64,000 nt of DNA, taken from contig JBLDXI010000010.1 in assembly GCA_047495785.1 (NCBI GenBank), forward strand, positions 248,001 through 312,000. Direction: 5' to 3'. This DNA comes from Lepidodermella squamata. Its lineage: Eukaryota; Animalia; Gastrotricha. Under the pieces are notes generated by a model that did no database searches, had not been told where the DNA came from, and worked only from the letters and a program-made list of their open reading frames with translations. Numbering within the stretch: the first letter of the stretch is position 1; each line of letters begins with the position of its first letter. Shown piece by piece: positions 1-48,200 of this stretch. The translations under genes and the position numbers were made by a program.

Positions 1-647
1 TACAAAATTGAAAACTAACAATTCTTTGATTATGTTCTTTAAAATTGACACTTAGCTCAGCTTGCATAGCGCTACCAAGTATGCCAATGCTATACGCCCG
101 AAGATCGCTATCGCGCGGTTGTTTTTCAGCCCATTCATAAAGCCGTTCGACGACTTCCTCGTTGTCGCGGAAGAATACAGACGATTCCACGCCCGGTAAA
201 AGGCTGAGCAATAGCCGCGTTGCCATTACTTGCACAGGACCCGGGTCGCCCCTCGCAGTGCAGTAATCATCCACCATCTATATATGTTTTGATTTACGAT
301 AGGAAGTGAACTAACAATATACTTACGCGTTGAATCAACCCATCTTCTTTAAATATTCTTTTCAGAATTGAGCCGTACTGACACTCAGGCTTGACCTTAG
401 CTACAAAAGCACGATATAATTACGATACGAAGTCCAAGTATCATAATAACTCACATGGATGGCGATCGTCGAACGGATCGGGATTGTGTTTCCAAAAGAG
501 GATACCTTCCTGTTCAACTATTTCAGTCAGACTCGTCAAGAAAGGGAGAGGATCGTGCCCTGCTCGAGAGATATCCGCATCCCATTGCTCGAGCAAGTCC
601 GAAACAAGCTGGGATGCGTTTCCAGCTCTTCCGGAACGCTCAGGCAT
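1..647 (-). CDS. DCAF1: DDB1- and CUL4-associated factor 1 (VprBP), 5' exons only; gene runs off the left edge
   Basis: LLEQW...NPDPFDDRHP in exon 1. Spliced exons continue PECQYGSILKRIFKEDGLIQR and MVDDY...ATRLLLSLLPGVESSVFF...LYEWAE...LRAYSIGILGSAM, matching the DCAF1 N-terminus. Short GT-AG introns. Confidence 0.9.
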
Positions 648-1860: not shown

Positions 1861-3438
1861 ATGGATGCCAAGTTGGAGACGCTATTCCAGCACATTGACA
1901 AGAGGCAGCAGCACTATATTGATCGTTTGGCTGAAGCTGTAGCCATTAAAAGTGTATCTGCTTGGCCTCATACTCGTGATGAATGCGTGCGTATGGTAAA
2001 ATGGACACAACAGGTTTGCAACAAATAAATGAATATTTTTGCTCTTATATCTGTTCTTGACCAGCATTTGGAGAAGCTCGGAGCGAAAACCGAGTTGAAG
2101 CCGATTCCTCATAAACAGAAACTCCCTGAAGGTGGAGAAATTGATTACCCTCCACTGATTTTCGGCTACCTGGGAAACGACAAGTCGAAAAAGACTATTT
2201 GCATCTACGGCCATTTGGACGTTCAGCCGGCGATTAAAACCGATGGCTGGGACACAGATCCATTTGTTCTCACGGAAATCGACGGTAAATTGTTCGGGCG
2301 TGGTGCCACAGATGACAAGGGACCAGTCCTTGACTGGATCAACTGCATCGAAGCTTATCAAGAAAACGGGATCGAAATTCCTGTTAACATCAAATTCGTG
2401 TTTGAATGCATGGAAGAATCAGGCTCAGAAGGCTTGGATGAAGCTATTCAGGCAAATCTTCCATTTTTCGACGATGTTTCTTTCATTTGTATTTCCGACA
2501 ATTACTGGCTGACTACTGACCACCCTTGTATTACTTACGGCCTGCGAGGAATCACCTACTTCTTTTTGTCCGTGGAATGCGCTCAAAGGTTAATATAATT
2601 CGTAAAAACTTGATCCTCCTTAATAATTTTGTGTTCAGAGATCTTCATTCTGGCCTTTACGGTGGCGCTGTTCATGAGGCTATGTGGGATTTGGTTGCAT
2701 TATTGAATTCGCTGATTTCAGCCGAGGGAAAGATCTTGATCCCTGGAATCTACGACACCGTCGCTAAACTAACTCCTGAGGAAGAGAAGTTGTACGAATC
2801 GATTCATTTCGACGTGAAAAACTACGAGAAAGAAGTTGGTGCTTCTCGGCTGCTGCACCATGAGAAAGCCCGCATTTTACAAAATCGCTGGCGCCATCCT
2901 TCGCTGTCAATTCACGGCATCGAAGGCGATTTTTCAGAGGCCGGTGCTAAAACTGTCATCCCACGAAAGGTTATCGGCAAATTCTCCATGCGTCTTGTTC
3001 CTCATATGGACCCTGTCGAAGTTGAAAAGCTGGTACGAAAGCACATTGATACTGAATTCGCTAAGCGAAACAGTCCTAATAAGATTAGCGTTTCGATGTG
3101 CCACGGTGCTCCGGCTTGGATTGGCGATATCAGTCACATTCAATACGAGGCGGGTCGTCGCGCTACCCGGCGTGTTTGGGGCGTTGAGCCTGATATGACC
3201 CGAGAGGGTGGCTCAATCCCAGTCGCGTTGTCCTTCGAAAACTTCACGAAGAAAAACGTGATGCTTCTTCCTGTGGGCCAATCAGATGATGGAGCTCACT
3301 CGAATAACGAAAAAATTGCTCGTAAAAACTACATCAACGGGGTAAGACTTGGTTCTGGTAAAATTTCGATCATTCCATAAGATTATTTTTTAGATTAAAA
3401 TTCTTGCTGCTTACTTTGAGGAAGCTGCTGCTCTCTGA
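1861..3438 (+). CDS. CNDP2: Cytosolic non-specific dipeptidase (M20A family), 4 exons
   Basis: Motifs [55 protein letters not shown]. Introns at about 2014-2064, 2589-2639 and 3342-3392; last exon [14 protein letters not shown]. Confidence 0.95.
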
Positions 3439-3646
3439 GAGAAAAAATTGAGAAAGACTTGATTGACAAATGGGTTTGGGCTTATTCAGTATTAAATCGT
3501 TTTAAAGGTTTTTCTCCGCTTTTGAAGCAGTTCTTTCACATGATCTGACCAAAGCAAAGTTGCCATTTTTCGCTTCGGTGATGCCATAATGCTATGATAT
3601 TATATTATTTCGCAATAAAATTGCTTCTAGGGTGTTATTATAGAAA

Positions 3647-4323
3647 ATGTTTAAGACCGTGGTTGAAAATCTGAAGGAGTTCGATGCTTCACTTAGCGAG
3701 TTGAAACAAGAATTGGATCCGCTGGCTACCAAAAAATGTCACGAAGTTCTAGCCGAGGTACGCAATTTCGCATGAAAGGAATACTTTTTAATTTTGTCTA
3801 TAATTTAGGCTACTCCTTTGCAAAAAGCTAAATTCAGCCTTTGCATGCTATATTCAATCAACAGTGCAGTTTGGGGTGAGTAATTTGCATTTTCGAATAA
3901 CAAATCCACCTTATGACGTCTAATTTTTCAGCTTACATGAGATTGGCTGGTAAAGATCCGAAAAATCTTGCTATTAAAGGCGAGCTCGATCGAGTTCGCG
4001 ATTACATGAAGCGAGCTAAGGAAGTCGAGGATCAAATTACAGGGGCCGAGCCAACTCTCCGTGTTGATAGAGAGGCCGCTAAAAGGACGATTAAACATGC
4101 GTTGTGGCAGGCAGCTCAAAGCAAGGGCAAAGACAAGCCTGAAGAAACGACTAGCGCCGATAAGAAGCCAGAGGAGACTAAATCGGAGGAAGCTAAGACG
4201 TCCCAGGATAAGGTCGAAGAAACCTCGAAAAAGCGTAAATCTTACGTTGTCGATCAGTTCATCCTCGCAGATGGGGATGAGCAAAAAGAGAAATCTCCTG
4301 AGAAGAAGCAGAAAAAATCCTAA
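3647..4323 (+). CDS. C1D: Nuclear exosome cofactor C1D/Rrp47-like, 3 exons
   Basis: Spliced product ...PLQKAKFSLCMLYSINSAVWAYMRLAGKDPKNLAIKGELDRVRDYMKRAKE...RVDREAAKRTIKHALW fits the Sas10/C1D domain. Confidence 0.9.
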
Positions 4324-4408
4324 ATTGTTGAGATTTTCTAGCATATTGAAATTACGTTTTATTATTCCTAATTTTTTTTTAATTTTTACGTGTTTTAGAT
4401 ATTAAATT

Positions 4409-5483
4409 ATGGAGGATAAACAAGAATTTGTTCAAGAGGAATATGTCCCGGTAACGGCTGGTTTGCAAATGGTTGACCAACTACCGGAGATTTTCAGTCG
4501 GAATTTCAGTCAAAGTGAAATCACGAAAACGTCTATAGGTCTCGATTTCGATGACCAGGCCTTTTATCTCGACGGAATTTTATCAAAAGAGGAATGCGAT
4601 GCGATCATAGCTATAGGAGAAGGTTTCGGATATGGTCCAGTTGAAAGCGATTGTAAAAAAGAATGCACGGCTAGAAAGTTTGTGCATTAACAGTAATGAG
4701 AAATTTCGCTTTAAATTTGAATTTTAGGGTCATGATTCATTCCAAGGCGCTATCTGATCTGCTTTTTGAACGAATGGCGCCTTTCATCTACGATATTGAC
4801 ATCAGCTCCGACAAGAATATTCACAGTTATCACCTCGAAGGCAATAGTTTCGCCATGCAAGGCATATGGTAATGCGTGCGAAATTCATGGGAAAAATCAA
4901 ATTTTAGCCGTAATTTCAGGCACCCGGTTAAACTCGATGTTACTTTCCGGCTAAGTCGGTATACCGAGGGCGGTTATTTCCGGCCTCATTTCGACGGATT
5001 TTACGCCGACCCTGAAGATCCGATCATGGTTCGAACGATGAAAAGCCTCGTGTTCTACCTTAACACACCCGATCCAGGCTGTGGCGGCGAAACAGTTTTC
5101 TTATCCGAAACTGAAAAAGATGAAAATGGCAACCCAGTCGTATTGAAAACTGTCCTACCAAAACCGGGCCGCGTCCTAGTTTTCAACCATCGATCACTTC
5201 ACGAGTCAATTCCGGTCGATAATTCGGTGAAATACATTATCCGATCCGATATTATGTTCAAGCGAATGACAACCGGCGAGCTGGGCGAAAAAGATCTAAT
5301 AGCCATCGATTTGTTAACAAAAGCTGAACAATTTGAGGTAAATTTTGAAGCAAAATCCGCCTTAAATTTAGAGTTATTTTCTAGATGGAAAACAAGGCAA
5401 TGGAGGCTGTTGATTTGTATCGGAAAGCTTTCAAATTATCCCCGTTGTTAGCGGAAAACTACTCGAATCGTGACTCGTCGTGA
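4409..5483 (+). CDS. 2OG-Fe(II) oxygenase (prolyl 4-hydroxylase-like), 4 exons
   Basis: LSKEECDAII, RYTEGGYFRPHFDG (HxD), FYLN..GGETVF, GRVLVFNHRSLHES (distal H), KYIIRSD. Last exon 5385-5483. Confidence 0.88.
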
Positions 5484-5573
5484 TGAAAAGAAATCGTTTA
5501 TTTTATGGAAAAATGTAGTTTGTTGCGGTTTAATAGCAGTTTTCATATATTTAAAGATTTATTATAACAAAAA

Positions 5574-6212
5574 ATGTCTGGAAAAGGCGGAGGTGCAGTT
5601 CGACGTGTTTTGCGTTCCGCGAAAAAGTCGCAGGAAAAAACGACCGTTCATCCGCCGTTCATGAAGCTGCAAATCGCAGCAGGCGGCGCCGCTCCCGCCC
5701 CGCCGCTCGGCCCGCAACTTGGCCAGCGTGGTATCCAAATCGCTCAGTTTTGCAAAGATTTCAACGAGAGGACGAAAACGATCAAAGACGGCACGCCGAT
5801 ACGGACTTACATTAAAATTAACCCGGATCGAACGTACAACATCCAGTTATACACGCCGCCGGTTGCGTATTTCCTAAAACAAGCGGCGGGTATAACGATG
5901 GGCGCGAGAAAGCCCGGGCAAGAAATTGCCGGGAAAATTACGCTGAAACACGTGTATGAAATCGCGAAGGTGATAGCGAAGAATCCGATGGAGGAAGGCC
6001 GTTCGTTGGAGCTGCTTTGCAAGGATGTCATTGCCCAGTGCCATTTTATCGGCATTGAAGTTGTTCGCGGTGATTTGGATGCGACTGAGTACGGTAAATT
6101 CCTCGAGGAACGCAAACAGGCTGTTGCTCAACAACGCGCCGAGTTGGACCAGGCTAAGGCGGCTAAGGTTATGCGAACCACGGCCGCGGCAGCCGCTACA
6201 ACCGCCTCATAA
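5574..6212 (+). CDS. MRPL11: Mitochondrial ribosomal protein L11 (uL11m), intronless
   Basis: [32 protein letters not shown]...YFLKQAAG...[13 protein letters not shown]. Confidence 0.95.
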
Positions 6213-6322
6213 AATGGAACGCTCAATCTACGAAAAAGCAGTCACTAGAAAATTAAATAATTTTTCTATTAAGGAGGATTTTTTTCATCGAAATAATTTC
6301 GATTTTTTTAGGTGATTTTACG

Positions 6323-7392
6323 ATGAGATTTTTAATTTGCATCGCCGCGTTATTTTGCGGCGCATGCCTGGCTGCTGAGACGGCGTCTGAAGTGGCAGTG
6401 CCTCTCGATATCACCATGTCGAATTGGTCGCAGGTTCTAGAAGGCGAGTGGCTTATTGAATTCTACGCGCCTTGGTGCCCGTCTTGTCGATCTTACGCGT
6501 CAATTTGGGAAGAATTCGCTCGAAAATGCCCGAAACGCGTGAAAGTCGCGCGGGCTAATGTCGATATGAGCCCTGAACTTAGCGGCCGTTTGCTCATTGT
6601 TTCTCTACCTTCAATCTACCAGTGAGTATTGGAAAATTCGAAAATCGCTCTAATTATCAATTCTTTTATTTTTAGTGTCAAAGATGGGAAATTCCGTCAC
6701 CACGAAGGATCTCGAAATCTAGAAGAACTCATTAGACACGTTAACGAACGGTTATTTGAAGAGATGTACGAGCCCCTTAGCTGGGTCTGGCATCCTCAAT
6801 CACCTCAGTAGGTTTCATTGACTTGAGAACAAATCAATAAAATTATTTTAAAATTTAGTATGATCATTCTTGGATTTTTATTCCGAGTTGCCGTTGAAGT
6901 TCGAGTAAGTTTAAAAATTTTTTGAATTTCACCGAAAAATTATTTCAATTTATTTTGTAGAATCTTCAAACATTTATGACGAATAACATGGGTCTCGCGC
7001 CTTGGCTGTCATATGTCGCTCTTTTGCTCTTGATGCTTTTGATCGCAATAATTCTTGGATTTGTAAGTTCAATGACTTTTTTCCGATTAAAATATGATTT
7101 AATTCTGATTTTTTTTCAGCTTGCCGTGTTGTTTGTCGATAAAGTGTGGTACCGAGGTCAAGACCAGGACGAGCGGCAGCATGTCCGGTCTCCTACCCCG
7201 ACGACGGAGGAGGAGGCTGATGACGATGACTACGAATATCATCGACGCAAAAAGCATCGAAGGCGCCACAAAAAGCGTCGTTCATCCGACGATGACGAAG
7301 ATCTGAGCGAGAATAGCACGTCGGTTTCAGACGATGATGACGATTCCGACACGAATGTCCGCAAACGGAGACATAACCCTGGAGATGCTTGA
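6323..7392 (+). CDS. Thioredoxin-related transmembrane protein (TMX1/TMX4-like), 5 exons
   Basis: Signal peptide, WLIEFYAPWCPSC active site, PELSGRLLIVSLPSIY, one TM helix, acidic/basic cytosolic tail. Confidence 0.9.
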
Positions 7393-8559: not shown

Positions 8560-9626
8560 TTAGGCCATGTTCGGATAGCTGGCATAGCTAAGAATGCCAC
8601 ACAAGTTCGTTCCACGAGCCATGCGGATGTATCCTTTGTCACCCCAACCGGTTCCCCAGCTGTTCTTTACAATCCAGAAGCTCTTGCCCGTTGCCGCATC
8701 CGTGCCGTAGCCAACAACCAGCACAGCGTGGTTGACAGAGGTCGAGCAGGCAGCGTCATTGTAAATTCCGGACTTGTACAATTGGAAGGAGCTCAAACCG
8801 GCGTTGATGGCGACGGCAACCGGGCCAGTTTGCAGGGCAACCATCAAAGCGGTTTCGTTGTTCTTCTGAACGTTGGTGAAGCCAGTAATGCTGGCATAGC
8901 GAGCCGCTGCGTTGAACTTGCAAGTGTGGCTGCTAACACCCGTGTAAGGATAAGCGGAACCCAAGTTGATGCCAGAGACGTTTTTGACGTAGGCAAAAGC
9001 TGAATTCATCCAGCCGCCATTACAGCCCTGGTTGCCGTAAGACCACGTGCAGTCCATGAGATTTTGTTCAGAAAAAGACATCAAGTTGCCAGTTTTGATC
9101 TTGTATCGGCTCTCCAGAGCTCCGGTGGATGAGAAGGCCCAGCAGGATCCGCATGAACCCTGATTTTTGACAGGGGTAACTGCGCTCTTGTTGCGCCAGT
9201 CGAGGCTAGCGGGGAGAGCCGCTGACACAATCGCTTCGACAAAGGGGGTGGCGCTGACGAGCAGCTGTTCGCCCAGTGGAACCTTAGCACCAAGTCGAGT
9301 TGCCGCGATTTCAGCCGAGCTCAGATCGGCAAGGTCATTGACATCCAAGCTGAAAGAAGCGCCAGACTTCTGATTGTGGCTGCGGATGAGAGCCAAGTTC
9401 GCCTTGAAAGTGTCACGACGGCGGCGTTCTTCATTCTTGTCACTGAAATCCTTCTTGTTCGATCGCTTGAAATCTTCCCAGTCATCATCGTCATTATTGA
9501 CTGGAGCACAATCTGAAAAGGATAGGCAAGTAAGTGTATACAGAACTTAAAACTGAACATTTGAGGCAAACCTGCAAGGTAGATCAAAGCAAATGCCAAG
9601 ACGGCTGCGTAGTAGACGTATTGCAT
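8560..9626 (-). CDS. Cathepsin L-like papain-family cysteine protease, 2 exons
   Basis: Signal peptide MQYVYYAAVLAFALIYLA, ERFNIN-type prodomain (EERRRRDTFKANLALIRSHN), QGSCGSCWAFS, NHAVLVVGYG, WIVKNSWG. Confidence 0.95.
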
Positions 9627-14066: not shown

Positions 14067-15729
14067 TCAGAACAAGTTGCACAGTTTAAAGTCTTTAGCA
14101 GCAGCTCGGAACGGCGATCGAGCACCATTCAACGATTGAGCAGTCGTTTCCGGATAGCCCTGGTACAAAGCGCCGAAATAACTCGGATACGGCGTCGTTT
14201 TCACCAGCCAAAAATCGTCAATCACCTTCTGCTGATCGACCGAAAATTGCTGGACATTTATATGCGTTTTGTTGTAAATTTTCATTGTAGAAAAGCCGTA
14301 ATCGGACGACCGAAACGCGCTCCATTCAGGTGGATCAGTCACGAAGCCGTCGGTATCTTCCTGGCAACCGGCCGACCCTGTCGTGATATGAACCGGACCC
14401 TTCGCGTTCAAATACGGCTGGCCAGGTGTGGAGCCGTTTTTCACCTCGCCGTTGTAAATCGGCCACAGCCTCTCGTAAGAATGCTCATGGGCCCAAATTT
14501 CGAAATCAACGCCGTATTCCATGAACAAATCTTCCAGGCCGCAAATGTGGAGGAAGGGCAGGCCTTTCCGCATCACCGATTCTCCTTTCGTGCAGTCATC
14601 CCGGTCGTCATTCGTGCAGTACATTGGTCGATGGCCAAATGTAACAATCCACGGCCGAGCTTTGCGATTTTCGGGTTTATTCGCTTCTTTCAGATCGTTT
14701 AACAGCCAGTTCCACTGGGCGACCACAGATTCCCAGCCGTAGTTGAGATAGAAGTAGAATTCGGTGGAAAACGAGATGAAATGAACGGGTCCAATGTTGA
14801 AACTGTAGAACAAGCTCGAGTTTGAACCGCCGGGCATAGAAAATCGGTTGACGTAATTCGAAAAATTACTGGAATGAAAATTATTTGAAAAAATGGGGTT
14901 TTTTATTTAAATATACTCACTAGGCTTGCTCGTGATTTCCTGGGCACACCATGTAGGGTACGTAGGCTGCAACTGCCTCAATCATTCGCATGAATTCATC
15001 ACCGGTCTGAGCGTTGTTCGAGTCCATATCGTAAGCGAAATCACCTAGCAAAACAACAAAAATCAGCTCAAACATTCAAAAAATCGACCCAAATTTGAGC
15101 AAATTTATTTCTGATTTTCCTGTCAATTTTAAGAATATCGACCCAATTTTGATCCAATTGTCGATGGACAATGCATAACAAATATTGAAAATTGCCATAT
15201 TTTTTGAAAAAACTTTGAAATGATTAAAAGACCCAGCTTCAGTTTACTTACCAACATGAATAACAGCGTCAAATTTGCCGCGTTGAACGTCCGACTGAAG
15301 GTACGCCATCGACCGAGAATTCACATTGCCCATATCGCCGAAAAACGCAATTCTCGGCACCCAACTATCCGTCGAACGCGGCAGTGCCCTGAAATAGAAC
15401 ACCGCACTCCAGGCCTGAAGCGGGCTGCCAACATGGTAGTAATAAGCCTTCCCAGGTTCCACCTGAAGAGTCACTCGATGAATAAACATTTCGCGATGAT
15501 CTGTCCCGCCGTCGATAAAAGACGTGGCGTAACCAGTTGCGCTCATTTCCATGTCAACATGCTCGCCATATTCGACCATGCTGACATTTGTCGCGTTTTT
15601 CGTCACCCATGTTACAACCATTTCCTCCTCAGTTCGGCCCAGGGCAATATGAATCTGCTCGGGCTGCACATAGATTTGCCCGTAAACGTAACAGCAGAAA
15701 TTCGCGAGGAAAATCGATAAAATTATCAT
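14067..15729 (-). CDS. ACP7: Acid phosphatase type 7 (purple acid phosphatase long form), 3 exons
   Basis: PEQIHIA, FGDMG, HVGDFAYD, PGNHE, GHRPMYC, AHEHSYER, TGSAGC. Confidence 0.93.
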
Positions 15730-15802
15730 AATAAATAATCTACCTTAAAAATAATTAATATGAAAAAACGGTGAAAATTTATTGCGTTTATGAAAGAACA
15801 AA

Positions 15803-17389
15803 TCAAGGAAAATCGTCCAACCGCGGCTTTTTCGCGCTAGAATCTGACGATGAATGGCCTGCTCGAACCTGGGACATGGTTATATACTTTCCAACGCCAG
15901 AACTTGTATGACTGGCCAGAGTTTCGACTTTTTTCGCTGGCCCAGGTTTTGCGACCGGCTTCGGCGGCGGGGCTCTCGCAGCTTTTTCCTCATCTTCTCG
16001 AGCTTTTTTAACCGCCTCGTCGGCGTCTTCAAACGGGTTGACAAACACAACAGTGTCTTCTATTGTTATTGGTTGCAACGGTACATCGCCTTCATTCACC
16101 TCGGTGCGTTCGATTTTCAACAGCGTGTCCATCCCGCCGACAATTTTGCCAAAAATCGTGTGGCGCCTATCGAGAAACGTGCTCGGGGCGAATGTGATGA
16201 AAAACTGCGATTTATTCAGATTCTTCCCGCCATTCGACATTGACACAACCCCACGAGCGCTGTGTAGCAACTGCGGGACAAATTCGTCGTCGAACGGTTG
16301 GCCGTCTTTAAACGCCGATTTACCACCATCACCGGTATTAGTCGGATCGCCGGTTTGAGTGAGGAAATTTCTGACGACTCGATAAAATCGACAGCCCTTG
16401 TAATAACCTGCTTTGCAGTGGCGGATGAAGTTGTCACAAGTTCGCGGTACTAAATCGCAATGCAGCTCAAGATTCAATGGGCCGAGATTTGTGACAATTC
16501 GGACATAGCCTTTCTTATTCTTTGGCATAAACCGATACCGGGTTTCGTCATCATCCAACACCGCGGCTTCTGTCGAGGTAACTCGGTCAGCGACAGTGCA
16601 AGTAAACGAGGCTGCAGCTCGACCAGTTGAATATAGAGCGGCGTTGTACTTTCCAGAAACTGTCGATTGGCCGGATGTACTCGGCTTCGCATAAATTTCC
16701 GCAACTTCAGCCGCTTCGGCCTCGCTCGGCTTTTTAAAATCTCTTTCCAGCGCCTTCAAAGTTTCAATCGCTTCGGGGTTAACGTTTTTCAGATGAATTT
16801 GAGCTTTTTTATCGCGCTCCTCTGCCATCTCTTTCTCATTGGTCAGCCCGTTCTTCACGTAAAAGAAGTCGGCCATGTTGAATTTATCCAAATTTGTCGG
16901 ATCTTGGATGTGGATGATATCGCTTCGAGTGAAAGGTTCGTCCGTAAGCAAATCTTTCCAATGTTTCGGTGTAATATTCAGCTGTTCTACAGCTTCAAAG
17001 CAATACACATTTCCAGTCTGTTTTACGGCAACAATGTGAGAATTTTCATTGAAAACCTTGAACATGACCGGACAATGGTACTTTCCATCGGCGTTTTTGT
17101 GGAAATTCAGCTTGACTAAATCTTTGACAGTCATCTTATCGCCGGTCAGTGGGTTAACGCCATATTTCTTGAGGAAGGGGATAATGCTGAGCAAATCGAA
17201 TACGACCCCTTCTTTGCTGCAATAGGGATTTTCGAATGGTTGCAATGATAGGGCACAGCACGAAAAAGGTAGTCGGCGAAACTTGGCTTTCGCCCCAACT
17301 TCAACCGTTCGTTTTTTGCCGCCCCATTCTTCTCGCCATTCCGTATGCGTGATGTAAAGCTTGTCTTTCTGATGCTGCTTTTTACCCAT
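15803..17389 (-). CDS. PPIL2: RING-type E3 ligase / cyclophilin PPIL2 (Cyp60), intronless
   Basis: MGKKQHQKDKLYIT, RRLPFSCCALSLQPF U-box, cyclophilin domain (GPLNLEL...PRTCDNF...SQFFITF...HTIFG). Confidence 0.95.
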   Translation of the reverse strand: MGKKQHQKDKLYITHTEWREEWGGKKRTVEVGAKAKFRRLPFSCCALSLQPFENPYCSKEGVVFDLLSIIPFLKKYGVNPLTGDKMTVKDLVKLNFHKNADGKYHCPVMFKVFNENSHIVAVKQTGNVYCFEAVEQLNITPKHWKDLLTDEPFTRSDIIHIQDPTNLDKFNMADFFYVKNGLTNEKEMAEERDKKAQIHLKNVNPEAIETLKALERDFKKPSEAEAAEVAEIYAKPSTSGQSTVSGKYNAALYSTGRAAASFTCTVADRVTSTEAAVLDDDETRYRFMPKNKKGYVRIVTNLGPLNLELHCDLVPRTCDNFIRHCKAGYYKGCRFYRVVRNFLTQTGDPTNTGDGGKSAFKDGQPFDDEFVPQLLHSARGVVSMSNGGKNLNKSQFFITFAPSTFLDRRHTIFGKIVGGMDTLLKIERTEVNEGDVPLQPITIEDTVVFVNPFEDADEAVKKAREDEEKAARAPPPKPVAKPGPAKKVETLASHTSSGVGKYITMSQVRAGHSSSDSSAKKPRLDDFP

Positions 17390-17616
17390 TTTAATTAACA
17401 AATCTAAATAGAATGCGGTCATGTTTAGATATGCAGAATCAGATTAAATTGTGTAAGGCACTGAAATAAAATCACAGGTATAAATTTTGGGAACCTAGGC
17501 TGATTTGCCGTAGATTCCAATGAAAAAAAAATGAGCAACATTAGAAAGAGATTGTCTTTCGATGGCAAAAAATGAGCACCGGCAAAAAGCTCAACAATTT
17601 GAAGTCATATTTGCTT

Positions 17617-18507
17617 CTAGTAACGCCGTGGAACCATACAGCTAGATGAGCAAGACAAGGGGAGACCGTTCGACTCTTCATCACGTTGAGAGCTGTCTGG
17701 TCCGGTCAGCGGAACAACGCGACGAGTAAACGCAGTGACTCCAACCCTGTTGTAGATATGTTTTACTTTTTCAGCGGGGTTAATGCTAAAAAGAACATAC
17801 CCAAGAAACGGCATGTTCAGAGCACCGATTGGAATGGGCATCGCGTAACCGTAGGACGCATCCGACCTCAAGGCTGGAGGAACTGGCTCATCTTGTTCCA
17901 AAACTTTGAAAGTTTTCGGCTCGTATCCTTGTTCGTGATCATATTCTATCGCAAAGTCGAAGTAGTAGGGATTGACCAGGCGGCCCATTAGTCCGGTGGC
18001 CTGCTGAATGTGGATCAGAAGAGTTTTTAGCTGACTCTCCAAATCTTTTCCGTTGAAAGGAACCGATGCATCCTCGTTGTTAGATGCTTTGCATTTCAAA
18101 ATAGCTCCAGAATCGTTGTATTCAAATGTAAATTGATACCACTCGTAAAAGACATCACGCCGAGCTGGATTGTCATAAAATCCCAACACAACACGCTTGA
18201 GGCATCGCTGGGAAATCGCAGCGCTCATATCAGCGACAAGTTCAAGAACTCGTTTGCACAACGGAATGTCATCACATTTCCTGACCAGCAGGGTTCTTAC
18301 GTCACCGAAAAGGACAGGAATGAAAGCTTTCTCGTCCATAGCTTGACGGGTGCAAAGAATATGCGAAATGGCAGCAAATAAACAACGTTTTAAAGCCGCG
18401 AGCGATTCCTTGATTGTGACACGATCATTCTTCGGAAAAAATACAACTTGGCAGGCCTCAACGGATGACTCCCGCTGGACGGCTTTCTCGCGTAACGTTG
18501 TAATCAT
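17617..18507 (-). CDS. Meiotic HORMA-domain protein (HORMAD/Hop1/HIM-3-like)
   Basis: ESLAALKRCLFAAISHILCTR...AISQRCLKRVVLGFYDNP...EWYQFTFEY resembles the HORMAD1/2 HORMA domain. Probable small in-frame intron near 17750-17800; 3' end uncertain. Confidence 0.78.
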   Translation of the reverse strand: MITTLREKAVQRESSVEACQVVFFPKNDRVTIKESLAALKRCLFAAISHILCTRQAMDEKAFIPVLFGDVRTLLVRKCDDIPLCKRVLELVADMSAAISQRCLKRVVLGFYDNPARRDVFYEWYQFTFEYNDSGAILKCKASNNEDASVPFNGKDLESQLKTLLIHIQQATGLMGRLVNPYYFDFAIEYDHEQGYEPKTFKVLEQDEPVPPALRSDASYGYAMPIPIGALNMPFLGYVLFSINPAEKVKHIYNRVGVTAFTRRVVPLTGPDSSQRDEESNGLPLSCSSSCMVPRRY

Positions 18508-25668: not shown

Positions 25669-26440
25669 ATGTTTAAGAAGTAAGTTTGATTTGATATTTG
25701 GCATCCTTTTTACTATGATTTTATTTTTTCTTAAGATTTGATCTTGCCGAAGATGTTTCGAGCACCAACATCATCAAATCATCGGTGCAACGTGGTATCA
25801 TTTCCCAGTTACAGGAGCAGTTCCCAAACATCTCCCACTGCATTAACGAAATAATTCCGGACAAAAAAGGCGGTCTGAAAGTGTCTAAATGGTCAATTGA
25901 GCTCTTCATTTGCGATACAGTACACTATATTTTTGTTTTGTAGCACAGAGCACGTTGAAGTTGTATCGTCTCCTGAGGGCGAGCCCCTCTTTTTCCGTCA
26001 GAGAGACGGTCCCTTCTTCCCAGTGCTGAAACTCGTCCACAAATGTGAGGTTTTTTGATCAAATTGTTTAAGAGCTCGATTAACGACATTATTATCTTCA
26101 GATCCTTACATTTTACCTGCAATGCAAGTCGACAAGGGTGCTATCAAATTCGTTATCAGCGGTGCAAACATTATGTGCCCCGGCCTCACTTCGAAAGGCG
26201 GCAAAATGAGCAACGTCGGTGCCAATTCTGTGGTCGCAATCACTGCTGAGGGCAAAGAACACGCGCTGGCTGTCGGATTGACCAAAATGTCGGCCGAGGA
26301 CATGTTAGTTTACGAAACTCCCGGCATGATTGATTTTTATTACGATTTTATTTTGCAGAATCAAAGTTAACAAGGACATTGGCATCGAAAATGTCCATTA
26401 TCTGAATGACGGCCTGTGGAAAACCAAGGTGATAAAATAA
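25669..26440 (+). CDS. MCTS1: Malignant T-cell-amplified sequence 1 (PUA-domain reinitiation factor), 5 exons
   Basis: MFKK|[18 protein letters not shown]; [27 protein letters not shown]; [13 protein letters not shown]. Confidence 0.95.
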
Positions 26441-32966: not shown

Positions 32967-35900
32967 ATGAAAAAGACTCGCGCATTGATTTTTCTTGGCA
33001 TTTTCTCTACTGCTGTTCTGGTTATTTACTGGAACATCGATTCTTCATCCGAAGAGCCAACGTATCAGGTACGTGATTTTAATTTGCAGCGTTCGGATGG
33101 TCCAATTTTCCACTTGGTCACCTTTCAATCAGTTTTTTTTACTATGGGAAAGAATTTATCGACTGTTAACGATTCAGACGGGCATCAGGGATTCCCAAAT
33201 GCAACCCGGGACACCCAAATCAACATGAACAAAATAGAAAACGCATTGATATATTGTTATTTCCTCAGCATCAATTAACGTTAATCGATGATCGTATTAA
33301 CGTTCTCGAAAAAGATATCAAGGAGACTCAAGTTCTTCTCGAAACGATAAAATCATACGTTCGCCGTTTAGCAAATTCCTATGAGCGAAAAGTCCTTCCA
33401 AATCCGAAAGCTTTAAATATGACGTTTTCTGACTACCAGAGCCTACACATCGCATTCTCAAACAAGTCAGATGACGTCAAATTTGAAGGTTTTCCAACTA
33501 CGGGAAGACGCTGTTCTGGAGACGTGGCTGTTGCTGATGTCAAAGTATTTTTACGGTTTAATTGACTTGGCTATTAGCTAATTTGTTACGTAATAAAAGG
33601 TTTCGGAATTGGTTCGTACTCTACCATTCGACAACATTGATGGCGGAGTGTGGAAACAGGGTTTCCCGATAAAGCCTGACCTCGGAAGGTGGTCGGAGAA
33701 AAAGCCACTCCAAATTTTTGTCGTACCTCATTCGCACACGGACCCTGGTATGATTGGATGATTTCTGAATTTATTCAGAGTCGAAAATAATGCTCTTATT
33801 ATTTCCAGGTTGGGTAAAAACGTTTCTGAAGTACTACGAATCTCAGACCAAGAATATCTTGGACACGATGTTGGTAAAGCTCGGCGAAGACGAAACAAGA
33901 AAATTCATTTACGCTGAAACTGTGTTTTTTGCACTATGGTGGTCTGAATTGAACGATGGAGATCGTCAGAAGGTTAGCTATTATAGTAAGGTGCATATTC
34001 GTTTATTTAATACCTGGTTATTTTAGGTTCGAAATTTGATCAAATCCGGACGATTGGAAATGGTCGGTGGCGGCTGGGTAATGCCTGATGAAGGTTAGTA
34101 TCGACATTACTTATTATTATTGATGAACAAAATTGCCGAATTTAGCTGTGACTCACTACTATGGTGTGCTGGACCAACTTCAAGAAGGTCACAGCTGGCT
34201 GAAACGCAATCTGGATCTCGAAATCACGTCGTCTTGGGCAATTGACCCATTCGGCCACAGCCCAACAATCGCTGTTAGTTTTTTGAGCTATTTATAGGAA
34301 ATATATTAGAATTGTGCCGAAATTACAGTATATGCAAAAGATGGCCGGTCTGCGTGGAGGAATTTTGCAGCGAGTTCATTACTCCTTGAAGAAGCAATTA
34401 TCGAAAGACAAAAACCTCGAATTTTTCTGGCGCCAGCAATGGGATGACACTGGCGAGACTGATTTTCTCACTCACATGATGCCGTTTTACAGCTACGACG
34501 TTCCTCATACTGTAAAATTCCTTTAAAATTGCATTTTCTCGTCTATATTTGTTCAAACTTGATAGTGCGGTCCGAACCCCTCGGTGTGTTGTCAGTTCGA
34601 TTTCAATCGATTACCTGGTGTAAGCAAAGTCCGCTGCCCATGGAATATCCAGCCGGTAGAAATCGATGAAGGAAACGTGGCGGCTCGTGCTGAAATATTG
34701 GTCGATCAATACAGACAAAAGGCTGAACTTTTCCGCACAGATTCGCTTTTCATCCCTCTTGGTGACGATTTTCGATGGGAGACACCAGCCGAATGGTAAA
34801 TTATTTATATTCATATTCGTGGAATCTGAAGTTATTAAAATTATTATAGGGATGCGCAGATGAATAATTATGGAAAATTATTCAAGGAGATTAATTCGCG
34901 GAAAGATTGGAATGTTCATATTCGCTGGGGCACTTTGAATGACTATTTCACCTCCCTTGCGAATGCCGACCGCAGTGACAGCCCATTAGATTCATTGGCC
35001 GGCGATTTCTTCACCTATGGTACTGACGATTTTGAAAAAAAAATGGAATTAAGCACAATTTCTTTTAAATTTTAGCCGATCGAGATGACCATTATTGGTC
35101 TGGCTATTACACGAGCCGACCGTTCCAGAAGCGATTCTCGCGAGTTTGCGAGGCCCAACAACGAGCCGCTGATCTCTTATTCTCACTTGCCATGGCTGAA
35201 TGCCAAAAATACGAAGCGAAATCGAGTAAAAAATGCCATTTCCCAGCCGGTCAATTGATGCACCAGCTGACTAGCGCCCGGCGAAATCTCGCCCTTTTCC
35301 AACATCACGACGGAATAACCGGAACTGCTAAAGATTTCGTGGTCGAAGACTACGGAATTCGACTTTTATCCTCATTCCAGGACAACCGTTACATTCAACA
35401 AGTTGCCGCGTCATTCCTGCTTTTGAATGATAAATCGCTGTTTCTGAGTGGGGACCAATTCAACGTGTTATCAGCCTTGGACGCGTATGCTACCCACGAC
35501 TCAATGCCAGAAATGTTTGTCCTAAGACCGGAAGAATCTGCCCCGAGATGGGTGTCTGTTTTCAACTCATTAGCCTGGAAACGGAATACAGTTGTTAAAT
35601 TGTTGGTTTCTAACCCGAATGTTACTGTTATTGATGAGAAAACAACGAAACCAGTCAGATCCGAGGCGTTTTTGCACTGGACTTCGACTGATCAAGCGTC
35701 CTCAGACACGTTTTTACTCGCTTTTGAGGTTGATATCGACCCACTAGCCATCGCTTTATACCGAATTGAGGTGGTTAAGAAACCAGGGCCGTTGCATACC
35801 TATGGCCACGTGACGATTTACAACTCAGCTAAAGAGGCTGAGCAGAAAAATGGACCTTTTACTGTTAAAAAAGTCGCGATTGACGCTATGACTAGCGACT

Positions 35901-38416
35901 TTGTGAAAACCGCGGCTTTCAAGGCTGAATTCAGCATGGAGTCTGGCACTTTACAAACCATTTCGAACGGCGATTGGTCCGTTGGGGCTGGCGTTAGTTT
36001 TGTCAGATATACCGCGAAGGACGTGAAGGAAAAAAGCGGGGCTTATCTGTTTATTCCTGACGAGAATGACCCGAAACCCGTCGAACAAAACGCGTCTCCC
36101 TTAATAAGAATTGCCAGGGGTCAGTTGATCAATGAAATCGTGTCATTTGTCACTTTTGTCGAACATCGTTATACCCTGGTGAATTTGACGAGTTATGCGC
36201 AAAAGTCGGCGTCCAAGTTGGCGAAAGACGTGTTGGCGGACGTTCAGATTAGCAATATTGTGGATATTCGAGGCGTGAATGAAAACTACGAACTTGCCAT
36301 GCGTATTCATTCGAATTTGAAGACGAAAGATACGTTCTATACTGATATCAATGGATTCCAAATGGCGAAGCGAGTTCGGTATCCCAAGCTACACACTCAG
36401 GTAAAATCCAATTTTATAAATTTTATAGAACCAATATTGGAGTTTCCAGACGACGTGCGCATCCTAAATTTGGGGCTCCAGCGCGAGATTTTCCCAAAAT
36501 TTGTTTTTTTTTTCGATTTTGACGTCTTTCAATGTTTTATTATTATGCCGGTAGATCTCACTATTACGCATATTTCGTGCAATGCGTGGTCAGTTTTTGA
36601 ATTATTCTTGAGCCTGCAGATATCGATTTTACAAATCCATGATTTTTCCGGAATTAGAAGTCTTGGAAACCCTTGAAAAGTTTCCATATAGCTGATGGTA
36701 CCGATTTACAGACTAAAATAAAAAATCCGAGGCCCATGGGTGGTATCAGCATTGATCGTGAAACGAAACTGCTGAAGTCGCAAAATAATAACTCAGTTTT
36801 AGTGTTGAGTAGGTTTGAACAAGGAGTTGCAGCGAATTGGAAGCAGAACCCTCGCAAGTTCGATGGGCAGACTTTTGAAATAGACGGAAGCGGCGTCGAG
36901 AGGTCGATGAGTGCCAAGTAGCTTGTGGTTTGCGTATTTAGTTGCGATTGCCCCAGCGGTTGCCTCCCAGTCTGAGAACAAGACCTGATGTTTGTTAATG
37001 GAGCCTTTTGCTTTCAGCGCCAAGTTGTTCGATCTCAGGAGACCACCCATGCCATTGTATTTTGCGAGTCTGTTTTCAGCTCGACAGAGAAGGTTTCGGG
37101 CAGTATTGCTCACGTCTTTCTCACGTTGGCGACAGCTTGAGCCAATCAAATGAGCTTGAATTGAATAATTGAGCTTGAAGATATTTATACCCATTTAAGA
37201 ACTATATTTAGTTGGATAAAATCCCATTTAAAATCGATAATATATTTGAAAATTTGAAAATTAAAAATATTTGAAATATTTGGGATAATTTATGACTCAA
37301 CTTACCTCCGCAAGAAACTTCTCTGCATTAAAAACGGAAACTAGTCTTGTTTTCAGAGCTAGTGACATTTCCAGGCATATTTTTCCCTAAACTATGCTTG
37401 GCGATCGCAAATCCTTGGATTACCAATATTTTTTCAAAATGTCCTCACATTCAAATTGTTCTCGAAATAATTCATCGCACTAACGTTTTATCGGAATATT
37501 TTAATTATTTTCTTAATTTCATAGGGAAATTTCTATCCTGTGGCGTCTACAATTGCTATCGAAGAAACTGCCGCGTCTAAAAATGCGAAATATGGAATGA
37601 GACTTAACCTATTAACTGCTCAAGTAAGTGATACTTTCTTTGCTTCACTTTTAAGGTGGAATAATTTTTACCTAATTTTAGTCCGCTGCTGCTACTAGTC
37701 CGTTCTCTGGTGCCGTTGAGGTAATCCTCGACCGCCGACAGCTGCAAGACGATAACCGAGGCCTTGGTCAGCCTTTAAAAGACAACAAGCGATTCGAGTC
37801 ATTTTTCCGCCTCGTAATCGAACGTCACGCCCAGCCGCTGCCAGAAAGCACGCCATCAACAGGCGCAAACCTGTTGCGCCTAACCATTCCCGTTCACCAC
37901 TACAGCATGGATCTAATGTACGGCCTCACAGTCATGCCGAGTCGATCCTCGCTGAGTACGGAGCAAACTAGTCGATTAACGACCTATCAACCATTCGGCG
38001 AGGCTGGTCATTCATTCCCCTGTGATGTGCATCTAGTTTCCCTAAGGCCTATGCAGGCTGATGTTGACACGAGGGAAAGTGCCGCTTCGGCTTCGACAAA
38101 ATCAACGCCGAACGTAGAACCAACAAAAACGCCGACGTTATCGTTGCACCGCCTGCTGACTGACCAGCAGTGCAGTAGTGGGGATGAGGTATCGGAGGCG
38201 GAAAAAGGCGCGGCCACCTTAATATCGACGTGTAATATCGAGGCGACGACAACGAAACTTGCTGATCTCTTCGCGAACACATTCCCGCAAATCAAATTCG
38301 ACCCTGTGCTGCTATCGGGTCGCCGGTCTGGTCTGTTGCTGTCGCCGAGCGACCACGCGCTGTCTGAAGTGCTAATACCCGGTCATATTCGTTCGTTCGT
38401 TGTAACGTTCGCTTGA
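32967..38416 (+). CDS. Golgi alpha-mannosidase II (GH38, MAN2A1/2-like), many exons
   Basis: N-terminal TM anchor; DGGVWKQG; [10 protein letters not shown]; GGWVMPDE; [11 protein letters not shown]; PLGDDFR; [11 protein letters not shown]; [10 protein letters not shown]; [14 protein letters not shown]. Confidence 0.95.
36401..37524 (+). other. Enlarged 1.1-kb mannosidase intron, probably carrying inserted or TE-derived DNA
   Basis: Donor CAG|gtaaaa at 36401 and acceptor atag|GGAAATTTCTAT at 37524. About 20 times the typical intron length, with a GC-richer core near 36830-37150. Confidence 0.55.
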
Positions 38417-45246: not shown

Positions 45247-48200
45247 ATGTTGAACGAAGCAGTTATCGTGAACAATAATTCGGAGCCGAATTCGGCCGGG
45301 CACAGTGACGACTCGCACCCGCCACTGGCGCAGCCGGCGTCGGCTGCTATCATTCAACCAGTTGTCGATACTTTGAAGGCTGAAATCATTAAGGAAGACG
45401 ACGCCGGTGTACCCGTTCAACCACCGCCTGAAATTGTTGTGAAAAACGAAGAAATCGACGGCGAACAGCAGCGCCCGCCTACGCCGCCGAACGACGACGA
45501 TTCAGCTGCGATCGCATCAGGTGATTACATAATTAAACCAGCGATTACAGTAACCCAGGAGAACGGGAATGAGGAAGAAGTTGAGGATGAGGAGGAGGAG
45601 CAAATCGGCTCGGAGGAGGAGGTTGAGGAGGAAGAGGACGACGAAGATCTGCCGATTAGTGCGTCGACGCGGCGCCGGGGTGCCACGACTCCGGCTCGGG
45701 GCGGCCGCGGTCGGGGTCGAACTCCAACGTCAAACCGGAGTAGCCAACGCCGGTCGCTATCTGCCTCAGTCAATAACGACAACAGCCAGCAGGAACAGTC
45801 TGATAACCACTCGTCAGCCTCGAATCACTCTGGCTCGAGTGACGACGACGAACCGCTGGCGAAAACGACGGCGAAATCGCAAACTGCAGAGCCAGCCGGG
45901 CCGCGGCGGTCGACCCGAGCCAGGCAGCCCCCTGCCACTACGCCCCCGCCGCCTGTTGAGGCGCCTCGAAAACGAGGTCGCGCTAGTAATAACAGATCGG
46001 CTAGTAATAATAACGCGTCGGCTGAAAAAGAGGTCAAGGAAGAAGATGTTGTTATTGCGGCTGTGGAAGATGGCCAGAAGAAGCAGCGGCGATCTGCGGC
46101 TGGCAGCGTGTTGAAACGCTGTGAAGCTTGCAACATTGAAGCCGAATGTTCGGCGCTGCGTTTCGGAAGTGGCCGATTCTGTTCGAAAACATGCGTCGGC
46201 CTCTACGCAAACAAGTAGGTCACGTTTTATTTTCGAAAATTGGTAACTAGGTCAACTTCATCGCAATCTGTCCATTTGAACCTTGAACGGGGAATGTTCC
46301 CTAATTTTATTTATCTTTTTCTGTCACTTCAACTCGAAATTTTAAGATTTCTGTGAATCTCCGGAACTTTTCTATTTTTTTGCTGAGTGTTGGCAATTTA
46401 ATACGTGCTTGCCCAACCTTGGATAATGAGCGGGCAATTTGGGTTGCTCATTTGCAACAGCCTCTTGAATTATTAGTTTGACCCGTCAAATCTGGGTCAT
46501 GTTTTAAAGCAATTTTTATAATTCATCGAAACGTTGAATGCCCTGCCGAGTTTAGTGCCAAACGAAAGCTGATGAGATGAGGAATTTCATACGAAATATC
46601 CCGTCGTTCAACTCCGAAACAGCCAGAAAATAAAACAAAAAATAAAACAAAAAATTCACCCGGGAATCTATTTTAAGGTGGAATTTTCTTTTTTTTTCCT
46701 TATGAGCGGTGTCGGCAAATTGCATTTCCATAGTTGCTTTCGTAACCTGTTAGGTATTTATGATTGTTTTTATGCGATTTCAGGCATCGTTTACGAGTTC
46801 GCAATAAATTGGCTAACGATGCAGCTCAACAAGACGGTGACGCCGAACCGGCCAGCAACAGCAGCAACCGAAAACGCACTTCTCTCGGCAACGGCACGGC
46901 CAATGCGAAGAAAACGCGCGCTCAGGTGAATAACGACGAGCAGTCAAACGAATCATCAGCCACCTCGAACGGCTCGTCATCATCTACGCCCACCTCATCG
47001 TCGTCCGGCGTTGCGTTCGACTGGGCGCATTATTTGCGCGAAACCAGCGCGAGTGCAGTTCCGAAAGAAGTGTTCCGAAACCCGTTCCCAACTTTTAACC
47101 CGACGCTGTTTTTCGAGGTCAACCAGCGTTTAGAAGGCATCGACCCGCGCCATCCGTCACTTTTCTGCGTTTTGTCAGTCGCCCAAGTTCAGGGTTTCCG
47201 CATCAGGTTGCACTTTGACGGCTACTCGCCAGCTCACGATTTTTGGACTAACGCCGATTCGCCCTACATTTTCCCATGTGGCTGGACGGAAAAATCAGGC
47301 CGGAAGCTGCAAATGCCAAAGGGCTGGAAGCGGTCGCGATTTTCGTGGCAGGCCTACTTCCGGGCGACTAGCTCAACAGCGGCCCCGAGTGAATTGTTCA
47401 CCAGCCTGCGCCTCCCAGCGCCACATCCTGGTCTGAAGCGGGGCCAGAAATTGGAGGCTGTTGATAAAACGAACACGCTGCTCACGTGTGTCTCGTCACT
47501 TGCCGACTTTTTCGGCGACCGCCTGCTCATCCACTTCGACGGCTGGAGCGATCACTTTGATGTAAGCTTCGATTCATTAAATTTCAATGCCACATCAAAG
47601 TCGAAATTCACCAAATTTTATAATCCAGTGATGAAATTAAATTTTATCAACTTTAATTAAATTTTTCAGTTTCTAAAAAAATGTAATTTATTAATTTCTA
47701 AATTCACATTTTGATTATTTTGATTAAGAAATATTTTAATGGTCCAAATATTTGCCAATTTTCCAGCTTTTTGTAACTCGAAAAAACATCTGTTGATAAA
47801 ATCTAGTGCTGGATCCTCTAATTTAGCGCTGCGACTCAGAAATTCTTAATTTTAAATTTAAATTTAGTTGGATTGATTCAAATTGGAATTTGTGGATATT
47901 TCATTTTTTTAATCAATCAGTTTTACTATTTAATTATTGCAGTATTTTATTATCATTTTATTTCAATATTTTTTCTCAGTTTTGGACGTCTGCATCCTCG
48001 CCGTACCTTCACATTGTCGGCTGGTGTCAAGACATGGGCCGAGCTCTGTCGCCGCCTCAGGATTACCCTGACATCGAAAACTTCACCTGGGAAGACTACC
48101 TGGCTGAAACCGGTTCCGAATCAGTTCCAATCGACCTGTTCCGAAGCCGCCCGCCCGCTCCTTTCGCCGTCGGCGCTAAGATGGAAGCCGTCGACCGTCG

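Follow-up and report, generated by a model that had tools for sequence, protein, structure and literature searches.

A conserved, operon-like run of five housekeeping genes with candidate trans-splice acceptors in a compact animal genome

Five unrelated housekeeping genes lie one behind another on the forward strand of a 64-kb stretch of Lepidodermella squamata DNA (contig JBLDXI010000010.1, positions 248,001 to 312,000; the whole stretch is called the window below). They encode a CNDP2-like dipeptidase, C1D, a 2OG-Fe(II) oxygenase, the mitochondrial ribosomal protein MRPL11 and a TMX-like membrane thioredoxin. This run is, in our judgment, probably an operon whose transcript is resolved by spliced-leader (SL) trans-splicing. 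That the layout is real and operon-like is well supported by the spacing of the genes, their deep conservation, the composition of the spacers and a window-wide signature of orphan 3' splice sites; that the genes are transcribed together, and that a spliced leader exists and is used, is what we infer from these features of the DNA.

Results

Gene models and introns

An initial annotation had placed five unrelated housekeeping genes on one strand between 1861 and 7392, with stop-to-ATG spacers of 208, 85, 90 and 110 bp. The spliced models bear out the gene content and reproduce the spacer lengths exactly; all five open reading frames (ORFs) are complete, without internal stops, and have Pfam support (Table 1). 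The C1D family was assigned via the ortholog in a metagenomic contig, described below (L001:278-855; PF04000, E = 2e-10 in Pfam). The models were built by hand from sequence alone, with inferred start codons, and gene ends outside the two tight clusters treated here are approximate. A home-made splice-aware dynamic-programming gene finder served only as a guide; it fused neighbours across the spacers or clipped starts.

All 22 verified introns of the window are 47-58 nt long and canonical GT-AG (12 in the run, at 47-57 nt, and 10 elsewhere). Acceptors are of the TTTYAG type, and 8 of the 22 donors read GTT..., with a T at +3 that is uncommon among animals.

Conservation in a metagenomic relative

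A search of 5.8 billion protein clusters with MRPL11 led, through its best match (77% identity), to a 3971-bp ENA metagenome contig, L001. This contig carries the end of CNDP2 (its last exon at 1-37), C1D, the 2OG oxygenase, MRPL11 and TMX in the same order and on the same strand as in the window, with orthologs reaching to L001:3674. Its spacers measure 240, 77, 100 and 80 nt, against 208, 85, 90 and 110 nt in the window. Protein identity between the orthologs is 55-79% (66% for the 2OG oxygenase). Four-fold degenerate sites are 27-29% identical, near the 23% expected from composition, which indicates that synonymous sites are saturated between the two species. Because gene order and spacer size have been kept at such a distance, the tight same-strand spacing is beyond what chance would leave. 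Alignment of the window spacers with those of L001 gave no conserved blocks except a weak signal in the second spacer (S2).

The start codons coincide with the onset of similarity between window and L001 orthologs, so that the spacers are not an artefact of annotation. An artefact of assembly or modelling, or a meaningless chance juxtaposition of genes, might be suspected given hand-built models with inferred starts; against this stand the five complete, Pfam-supported ORFs, the agreement of the starts with ortholog similarity, and above all L001: there a different species, independently assembled, has the same arrangement, which effectively refutes such an explanation. We regard it as highly improbable.

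Intron turnover between the two species is high: 3 of the 9 window introns of C1D, the 2OG oxygenase and TMX are at positions shared with L001, and TMX has an intron private to L001, after EWLIEL. A scan of JGI metagenomes with an MRPL11 profile returned mostly bacterial L11 and found no further syntenic relatives. A leader search on five other contigs carrying MRPL11 (L002-L006, 58-60% identity) found ordinary, unrelated 5' ends; these contigs are probably from other phyla.

A second tight cluster

A second operon-like unit, HORMA-PPIL2-PAP (14067-18507, reverse strand), lies outside the region picked out by the initial annotation. In it the gene for a purple acid phosphatase (PAP) follows the intronless PPIL2 gene at 73 nt, and PPIL2 itself comes 194 nt after a HORMA gene. 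The PPIL2-PAP spacer reads, in order, stop, AATAAA at +20, a T-rich stretch, TTTTTAAG, 14 nt and ATG; the acceptor-like AG, 14 nt before the PAP ATG, scores 8.5 with the matrix described below.

Contig L007, from the same metagenome as L001, keeps the PPIL2-PAP pair together with a 73-nt spacer (L007:991-4126). Both flanks of the pair are there occupied by unrelated genes on the opposite strand, so that neither the HORMA link nor the downstream neighbours are kept; in the window, the gene downstream of PAP is a kinase, 1.8 kb away. Taking L001 and L007 together, tight junctions are conserved in five of five cases and the loose junctions flanking PPIL2-PAP in none of two (Fisher p about 0.05). 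In this small sample, then, order inside the units is kept more strongly than that of their surroundings, as would be expected were tight clusters impossible to break up.

Spacer size, poly(A) signals and composition

Genes of the run are far closer to one another (208, 85, 90 and 110 nt) than other genes of the window, where same-strand, convergent and divergent gaps range from 483 to more than 3000 nt, plus an intermediate class of 194-329 nt (with approximate annotation). The initial annotation had remarked that the three shortest spacers contain no AATAAA and leave little room for a 3' untranslated region (UTR), a promoter and further 5' elements. The absence of AATAAA from S2-S4 is confirmed, with the qualification that ATTAAA occurs in S2 (4401) and S4 (6252), and the argument from room is backed by the rest of the window: past the stop codons of solitary or run-ending genes, the first AATAAA or ATTAAA comes only after 128-391 nt (190-391 nt in most). 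The TMX-like gene, which ends the run, is itself followed by its first AATAAA at 391 nt, and a cathepsin L gene in convergent orientation has its end at 8560. Since these distances exceed the whole of S2, S3 or S4 (85-110 nt), the short spacers are too tight for an independent 3'UTR, promoter and 5'UTR.

The longer S1 is accounted for by what appears to be a normal 3'UTR of CNDP2. Its AATAAA lies 23 nt ahead of the best acceptor-like AG (3642-3643) and 27 nt ahead of the C1D ATG, and the 240-nt S1 of L001 likewise has its AATAAA near the end, 46 nt ahead of the C1D ATG. With the signal this close to the next ATG in both species, there is no room for a promoter after it. A poly(A) signal directly before the next acceptor, as in operons with no intercistronic region, would fit S1 of both species and the PPIL2-PAP spacer, but not S2 and S3.

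The tight spacers are 71-82% AT and strand-skewed, with a pooled sense-strand T/(A+T) of 0.59 (p = 9e-5). In this they resemble introns (73% AT, T/(A+T) 0.56) and differ from the non-coding DNA on either side of the run (56-65% AT, 0.49-0.51).

Orphan 3' splice sites across the window

Acceptors were scored with a 12-position 3' splice-site matrix built from the 22 window introns and calibrated by leave-one-out, which replaced a noisier 20-position matrix; true window introns have a median score of 8.3 (range 2.2-11.6). An acceptor scoring at least 8 was present within 40 nt upstream of 7 of 16 window start codons, compared with 1.9% of non-coding ATGs (binomial 8.5e-9), and of none of the 16 starts in an antisense-strand control. 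These seven strong acceptors, at PAP, PPIL2, Sel1, PLD, LIG3, Abi and an FCS-zinc-finger gene (Table 1), sit 3-38 nt before the ATG, and none is paired with a donor at the 47-58-nt intron length. PPIL2, PAP, Sel1, LIG3 and Abi seem to have complete N-termini, on the evidence of signal peptides, N-terminal conservation or the beginning of a zf-PARP domain. If SL trans-splicing is widespread, orphan 3' splice sites should be in excess immediately ahead of start codons, as they are here.

Their occurrence before clustered and solitary starts alike suggests either genome-wide trans-splicing or atypically long 5'UTR introns. Under the latter, the acceptor-like AGs would be ordinary cis acceptors served by an upstream non-coding first exon, possibly a shared one before CNDP2. 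Such introns are common in animals and can exceed coding introns in length, and strong 3' splice motifs also precede the non-clustered genes Abi, LIG3 and Sel1. Against this, among the nine starts with the best acceptors (6.7-10.8), a donor scoring at least 5 within 39-130 nt upstream was found only for PAP, 125 nt off, in a window whose introns do not exceed 58 nt. For PAP, TMX, the 2OG oxygenase and MRPL11, moreover, the donor must fall within the coding sequence of the upstream gene, and a single first exon spliced alternatively to five genes would amount to something polycistron-like and unusual in its own right. We therefore think an origin of the AGs in 5'UTR introns distinctly unlikely.

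Candidate acceptors within the run and points against an operon

The initial annotation had proposed specific trans-splice acceptors, AGs ending at 3630, 4398, 5556 and 6311. These AGs are present, 16, 10, 17 and 11 nt before the respective ATGs, but as acceptors they score 2.4, 2.9, 1.6 and 6.9, and only 6311 resembles a genuine acceptor. Among ATGs in the window's non-coding DNA, 33% have an AG 10-17 nt upstream in any case, which makes this feature weak by itself. Better candidates are available in two spacers: AG 3642-3643 in S1 (6.7) beats 3629-3630, and AG 5538-5539 in S3 (5.2), 34 nt before the ATG, beats 5555-5556. For S2 the candidate stays at 4397-4398; the corresponding 77-nt spacer of L001 has a strong AG, scoring 7.5, at the same distance of 10 nt from the ATG. 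S4 offers 6272-6273 (6.3) besides 6310-6311. The operon proposed by the initial annotation is thus upheld in its layout, by the conserved order and by the window-wide orphan acceptors, and weakened in its particular AGs, most of which are poor matches.

Several observations weigh against an operon resolved by trans-splicing. The best acceptors of the four run spacers (6.7, 2.9, 5.2 and 6.9) are moderate beside the intron median of 8.3, and individually they fall within chance (empirical fractions 0.05-0.32). The 90 nt of S3 contain no canonical poly(A) signal, and the ATTAAA of S2 lies 3' of the candidate acceptor AG (4398). Rfam searches at gathering and permissive thresholds found nothing in the 64-kb window, although 64 kb is a poor place to look for SL RNA genes and lineage-specific SL RNAs lie outside Rfam. 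The sample of synteny comprises two short contigs from one metagenome. Taken together, the acceptors of the five tight window junctions are modestly above chance (about p = 0.005, combined by hand); when the cluster-internal starts of the two species, ten in all, are pooled, the best acceptors within 40 nt are modestly better than in non-coding controls, with fractions of 0.02-0.34 and a hand-combined p of about 1e-3, in a set where orthologous sites are not fully independent.

Another explanation is that the genes are independent but overlapping transcription units in a streamlined genome, expressed without trans-splicing. The annelid Dimorphilus has a compact genome without operons (PMC7854359), so operons do not follow from compaction by itself, and the acceptor scores of the 2OG oxygenase and MRPL11 lie within the chance range. 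A further element could serve such units as an initiator: TTTCAT, a T-run followed by CAT, occurs in 5 of the 10 cluster-internal spacers, 33-42 nt before the ATG in four of them, and in none of 12 other gene upstream regions, against a chance rate of 3.8% per 70-nt window. The motif was, however, picked post hoc among all 6-mers and its significance is lost after correction; it could also be a branch site or a U-rich 3'-end ('Ur-like') element. Independent units would have to place the 3'UTR and poly(A) signal of one gene and the core promoter and 5'UTR of the next within 73-110 nt, where elsewhere in the window the stop-to-signal distance alone is greater. They should also separate freely, whereas order and spacing were kept at saturated synonymous divergence while the neighbours of PPIL2-PAP changed; the intron-like, strand-skewed composition of the spacers also speaks against them. 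On balance we consider independent units unlikely, and favour an SL-resolved operon.

Affinities and surroundings of the locus

Named homologs of the window proteins peak at 57% (MRPL11), 54% (PPIL2) and 47% (LIG3) identity, and these best matches are scattered over molluscs, annelids, arthropods, tardigrades and deuterostomes; the nearest named homolog of the 2OG oxygenase is a protein of the snail Biomphalaria, at 36% identity. In single-gene trees of PPIL2 and MRPL11, the window and its metagenomic relative form an isolated long branch. Nematodes and rotifers have public proteomes that are missing from the best matches, which makes them unlikely relatives; by the protein matches, a lineage lacking an annotated genome, or an appendicularian other than O. 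dioica, would be a candidate. It is possible, and we put it forward only tentatively, that the two belong to a lineage with no annotated genome for which neither SL trans-splicing nor operons have ever been reported. Sturgeon LIG3 entries marked 'UNVERIFIED_CONTAM' were the top-scoring LIG3 matches but say nothing about the lineage, the one in L008 (VSKV01001202.1, Acipenser sinensis) spanning 24 kb in vertebrate style.

The window has a GC content of about 43% and is very compact, with about one gene per 2 kb in its annotated parts and long exons, such as a 2.6-kb single-exon stretch of LIG3. Scans of the 64 kb for repeats of at least 40 nt and for tRNAs found none. Genes fall into same-strand blocks: forward at 1861-7392, reverse at 8560-31821 except for a forward PUA-domain gene (about 25669-26440), forward at about 33500-53661, and reverse thereafter. 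One forward ORF (37682-38416) seems to be the C-terminal portion of a GH38 alpha-mannosidase gene (33471-38416), not a separate gene. Another, at 45247-46218, encodes a disordered protein with an FCS-type zinc finger at its end and lies directly upstream of L3MBTL- or Scm-like ORFs with MBT repeats and a SAM domain (to 49194); it and they may be one gene or two.

Table 1. Features of the five-gene run, the second tight cluster and the strong orphan acceptors (window coordinates unless preceded by a contig name; acceptor positions are those of the gene start)
Feature	Position	Strand	Details
CNDP2-like M20 dipeptidase (gene 1)	1861-2013, 2065-2588, 2639-3341, 3394-3438	+	4 exons, 474 aa; Pfam Peptidase_M20/M20_dimer
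Spacer S1	3439-3646	+	208 nt; AATAAA 3614-3619
C1D (gene 2; Sas10/Utp3/C1D family)	3647-3757, 3809-3875, 3932-4323	+	3 exons, 189 aa
Spacer S2	4324-4408	+	85 nt, 82% AT, T/(A+T) 0.67; ATTAAA 4401-4406
2OG-Fe(II) oxygenase (gene 3)	4409-4677, 4728-4868, 4920-5337, 5385-5483	+	4 exons, 308 aa; Pfam 2OG-FeII_Oxy_3
Spacer S3	5484-5573	+	90 nt; TTTCAT 5541-5546
MRPL11, mitochondrial ribosomal protein L11 (gene 4)	5574-6212	+	single exon, 212 aa; Pfam Ribosomal_L11_N/L11
Spacer S4	6213-6322	+	110 nt; ATTAAA at 6252; TTTCAT 36-41 nt before ATG
TMX-like membrane thioredoxin (gene 5, end of run)	6323-6621, 6676-6807, 6859-6904, 6961-7062, 7120-7392	+	5 exons, 283 aa; Pfam Thioredoxin
HORMA gene	18507-17617	-	194 nt upstream of PPIL2
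PPIL2	17422-15803	-	intronless
PPIL2-PAP spacer	15730-15802	-	73 nt
Purple acid phosphatase (PAP)	ATG 15729, exons down to 14067	-	73 nt after PPIL2
TTTCAT sites, window	5541-5546, 6282-6287	+	
TTTCAT sites, window	15765-15770, 15795-15800	-	
TTTCAT sites, L001	L001:889-894, 267-272		
Orphan acceptor, PAP	15729	-	score 8.5
Orphan acceptor, PPIL2	17422	-	score 10.8
Orphan acceptor, Sel1	24094	-	score 9.3
Orphan acceptor, PLD	28662	-	score 9.2
Orphan acceptor, LIG3	31821	-	score 9.5
Orphan acceptor, FCS-zinc-finger gene	45247	+	score 10.4
Orphan acceptor, Abi	52489	+	score 8.3

Discussion

The features of the run can be assembled into a simple proposal. Transcription would start from one promoter ahead of CNDP2, within the roughly 1.1-1.8 kb of non-coding DNA that precedes 1861, and yield a pre-mRNA spanning all five genes. 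Upstream cistrons would undergo cleavage and polyadenylation within the short spacers rich in AT and in T, and a capped spliced leader would be trans-spliced onto downstream cistrons at an AG from a few to about 35 nt before their ATG. PPIL2-PAP would be a separate polycistronic unit of the same compact genome. With 73-110 nt between stop and ATG, and with the S1 AATAAA about 23 nt before the acceptor, such transcripts would have little or no intercistronic region. The functions brought together in the run (mitochondrial ribosome, RNA processing, peptidase and redox housekeeping) belong to the housekeeping and metabolism class that is enriched among known animal operon genes (PMC12460157).

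What the locus offers is a tangible candidate operon of five genes, conserved and lying in a compact genome with no close annotated relative. It also brings precise candidate acceptors and a signature that can be read within a single genome, namely orphan 3' splice sites before ATGs. SL trans-splicing and operons are patchily distributed among animals, occurring in nematodes, tunicates, flatworms, rotifers, chaetognaths, some crustaceans, cnidarians and ctenophores; the number of their origins is debated, as is the role of genome compaction as a driver. If the run is such an operon and its lineage is one for which operons have not been reported, it would represent another, possibly independent, origin in Metazoa, with an unusually short cistron spacing of 73-110 nt kept until synonymous sites were saturated. 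The locus also carries a warning for annotation: gene finders will fuse genes arranged in this way, as our own dynamic programme did when it merged all five.

Among animals with known operon systems, rotifers and flatworms have NCBI proteomes that give no close matches to the window proteins. The window differs in gene density from the chaetognath Paraspadella, whose genome is 257 Mb: at about one gene per 2 kb it is far denser. Chaetognath operonic genes are, like those of the run, enriched for metabolism and housekeeping. A working definition used for chaetognaths counts genes less than 250 bp apart, with SL evidence, as an operon (PMC12460157). By the spacing limit alone the five-gene run, HORMA-PPIL2-PAP and a kinase-ankyrin pair would qualify here.

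Nematode operons share more of the layout: same-strand housekeeping genes whose order is kept over deep divergence, introns of about 50 nt and T-rich TTTYAG acceptors. The nematode sequence of AATAAA, U-rich stretch and AG is matched by the PPIL2-PAP spacer. The proteins point elsewhere, no nematode protein being among the best 120 matches for three window genes. The window also encodes LIG3, a gene that C. elegans is not known to have. In C. elegans, intercistronic distances, from poly(A) site to trans-splice site, are mostly 50-200 bp (PMC7668243). The SL2 type has about 100-130 nt between these two sites, whereas here 73-110 nt is the whole distance from stop to ATG. The run accordingly does not show the SL2-type intercistronic region of about 100 nt with a Ur element; in S1, AATAAA and acceptor are 23 nt apart.

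Tunicates (Ciona intestinalis and Oikopleura dioica, each with a single spliced leader) likewise combine a compact genome, tiny introns and same-strand housekeeping genes. Their intercistronic regions are very short or absent: operons have been defined with cut-offs of 60-84 bp and have median distances of 1-57 bp, and the spacing of the run agrees with the tunicate criterion of less than 60-100 bp (PMC7986045). The leader is documented in tunicates, whereas here it is predicted from sequence, and in contrast to tunicates all 22 introns here are canonical GT-AG. Protein trees do not group the window with tunicates, in a placement that is itself weakly settled, and beside the mostly dicistronic operons of Ciona a five-gene run is long. 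As in S1, the tunicate poly(A) signal lies almost on top of the next acceptor. The tunicate leader is used on monocistronic genes too, which would match the orphan acceptors seen here at Abi, LIG3 and Sel1. The spacing of the run thus resembles that of tunicate-type operons or the rarer C. elegans SL1-type operons more than the classic SL2 type.

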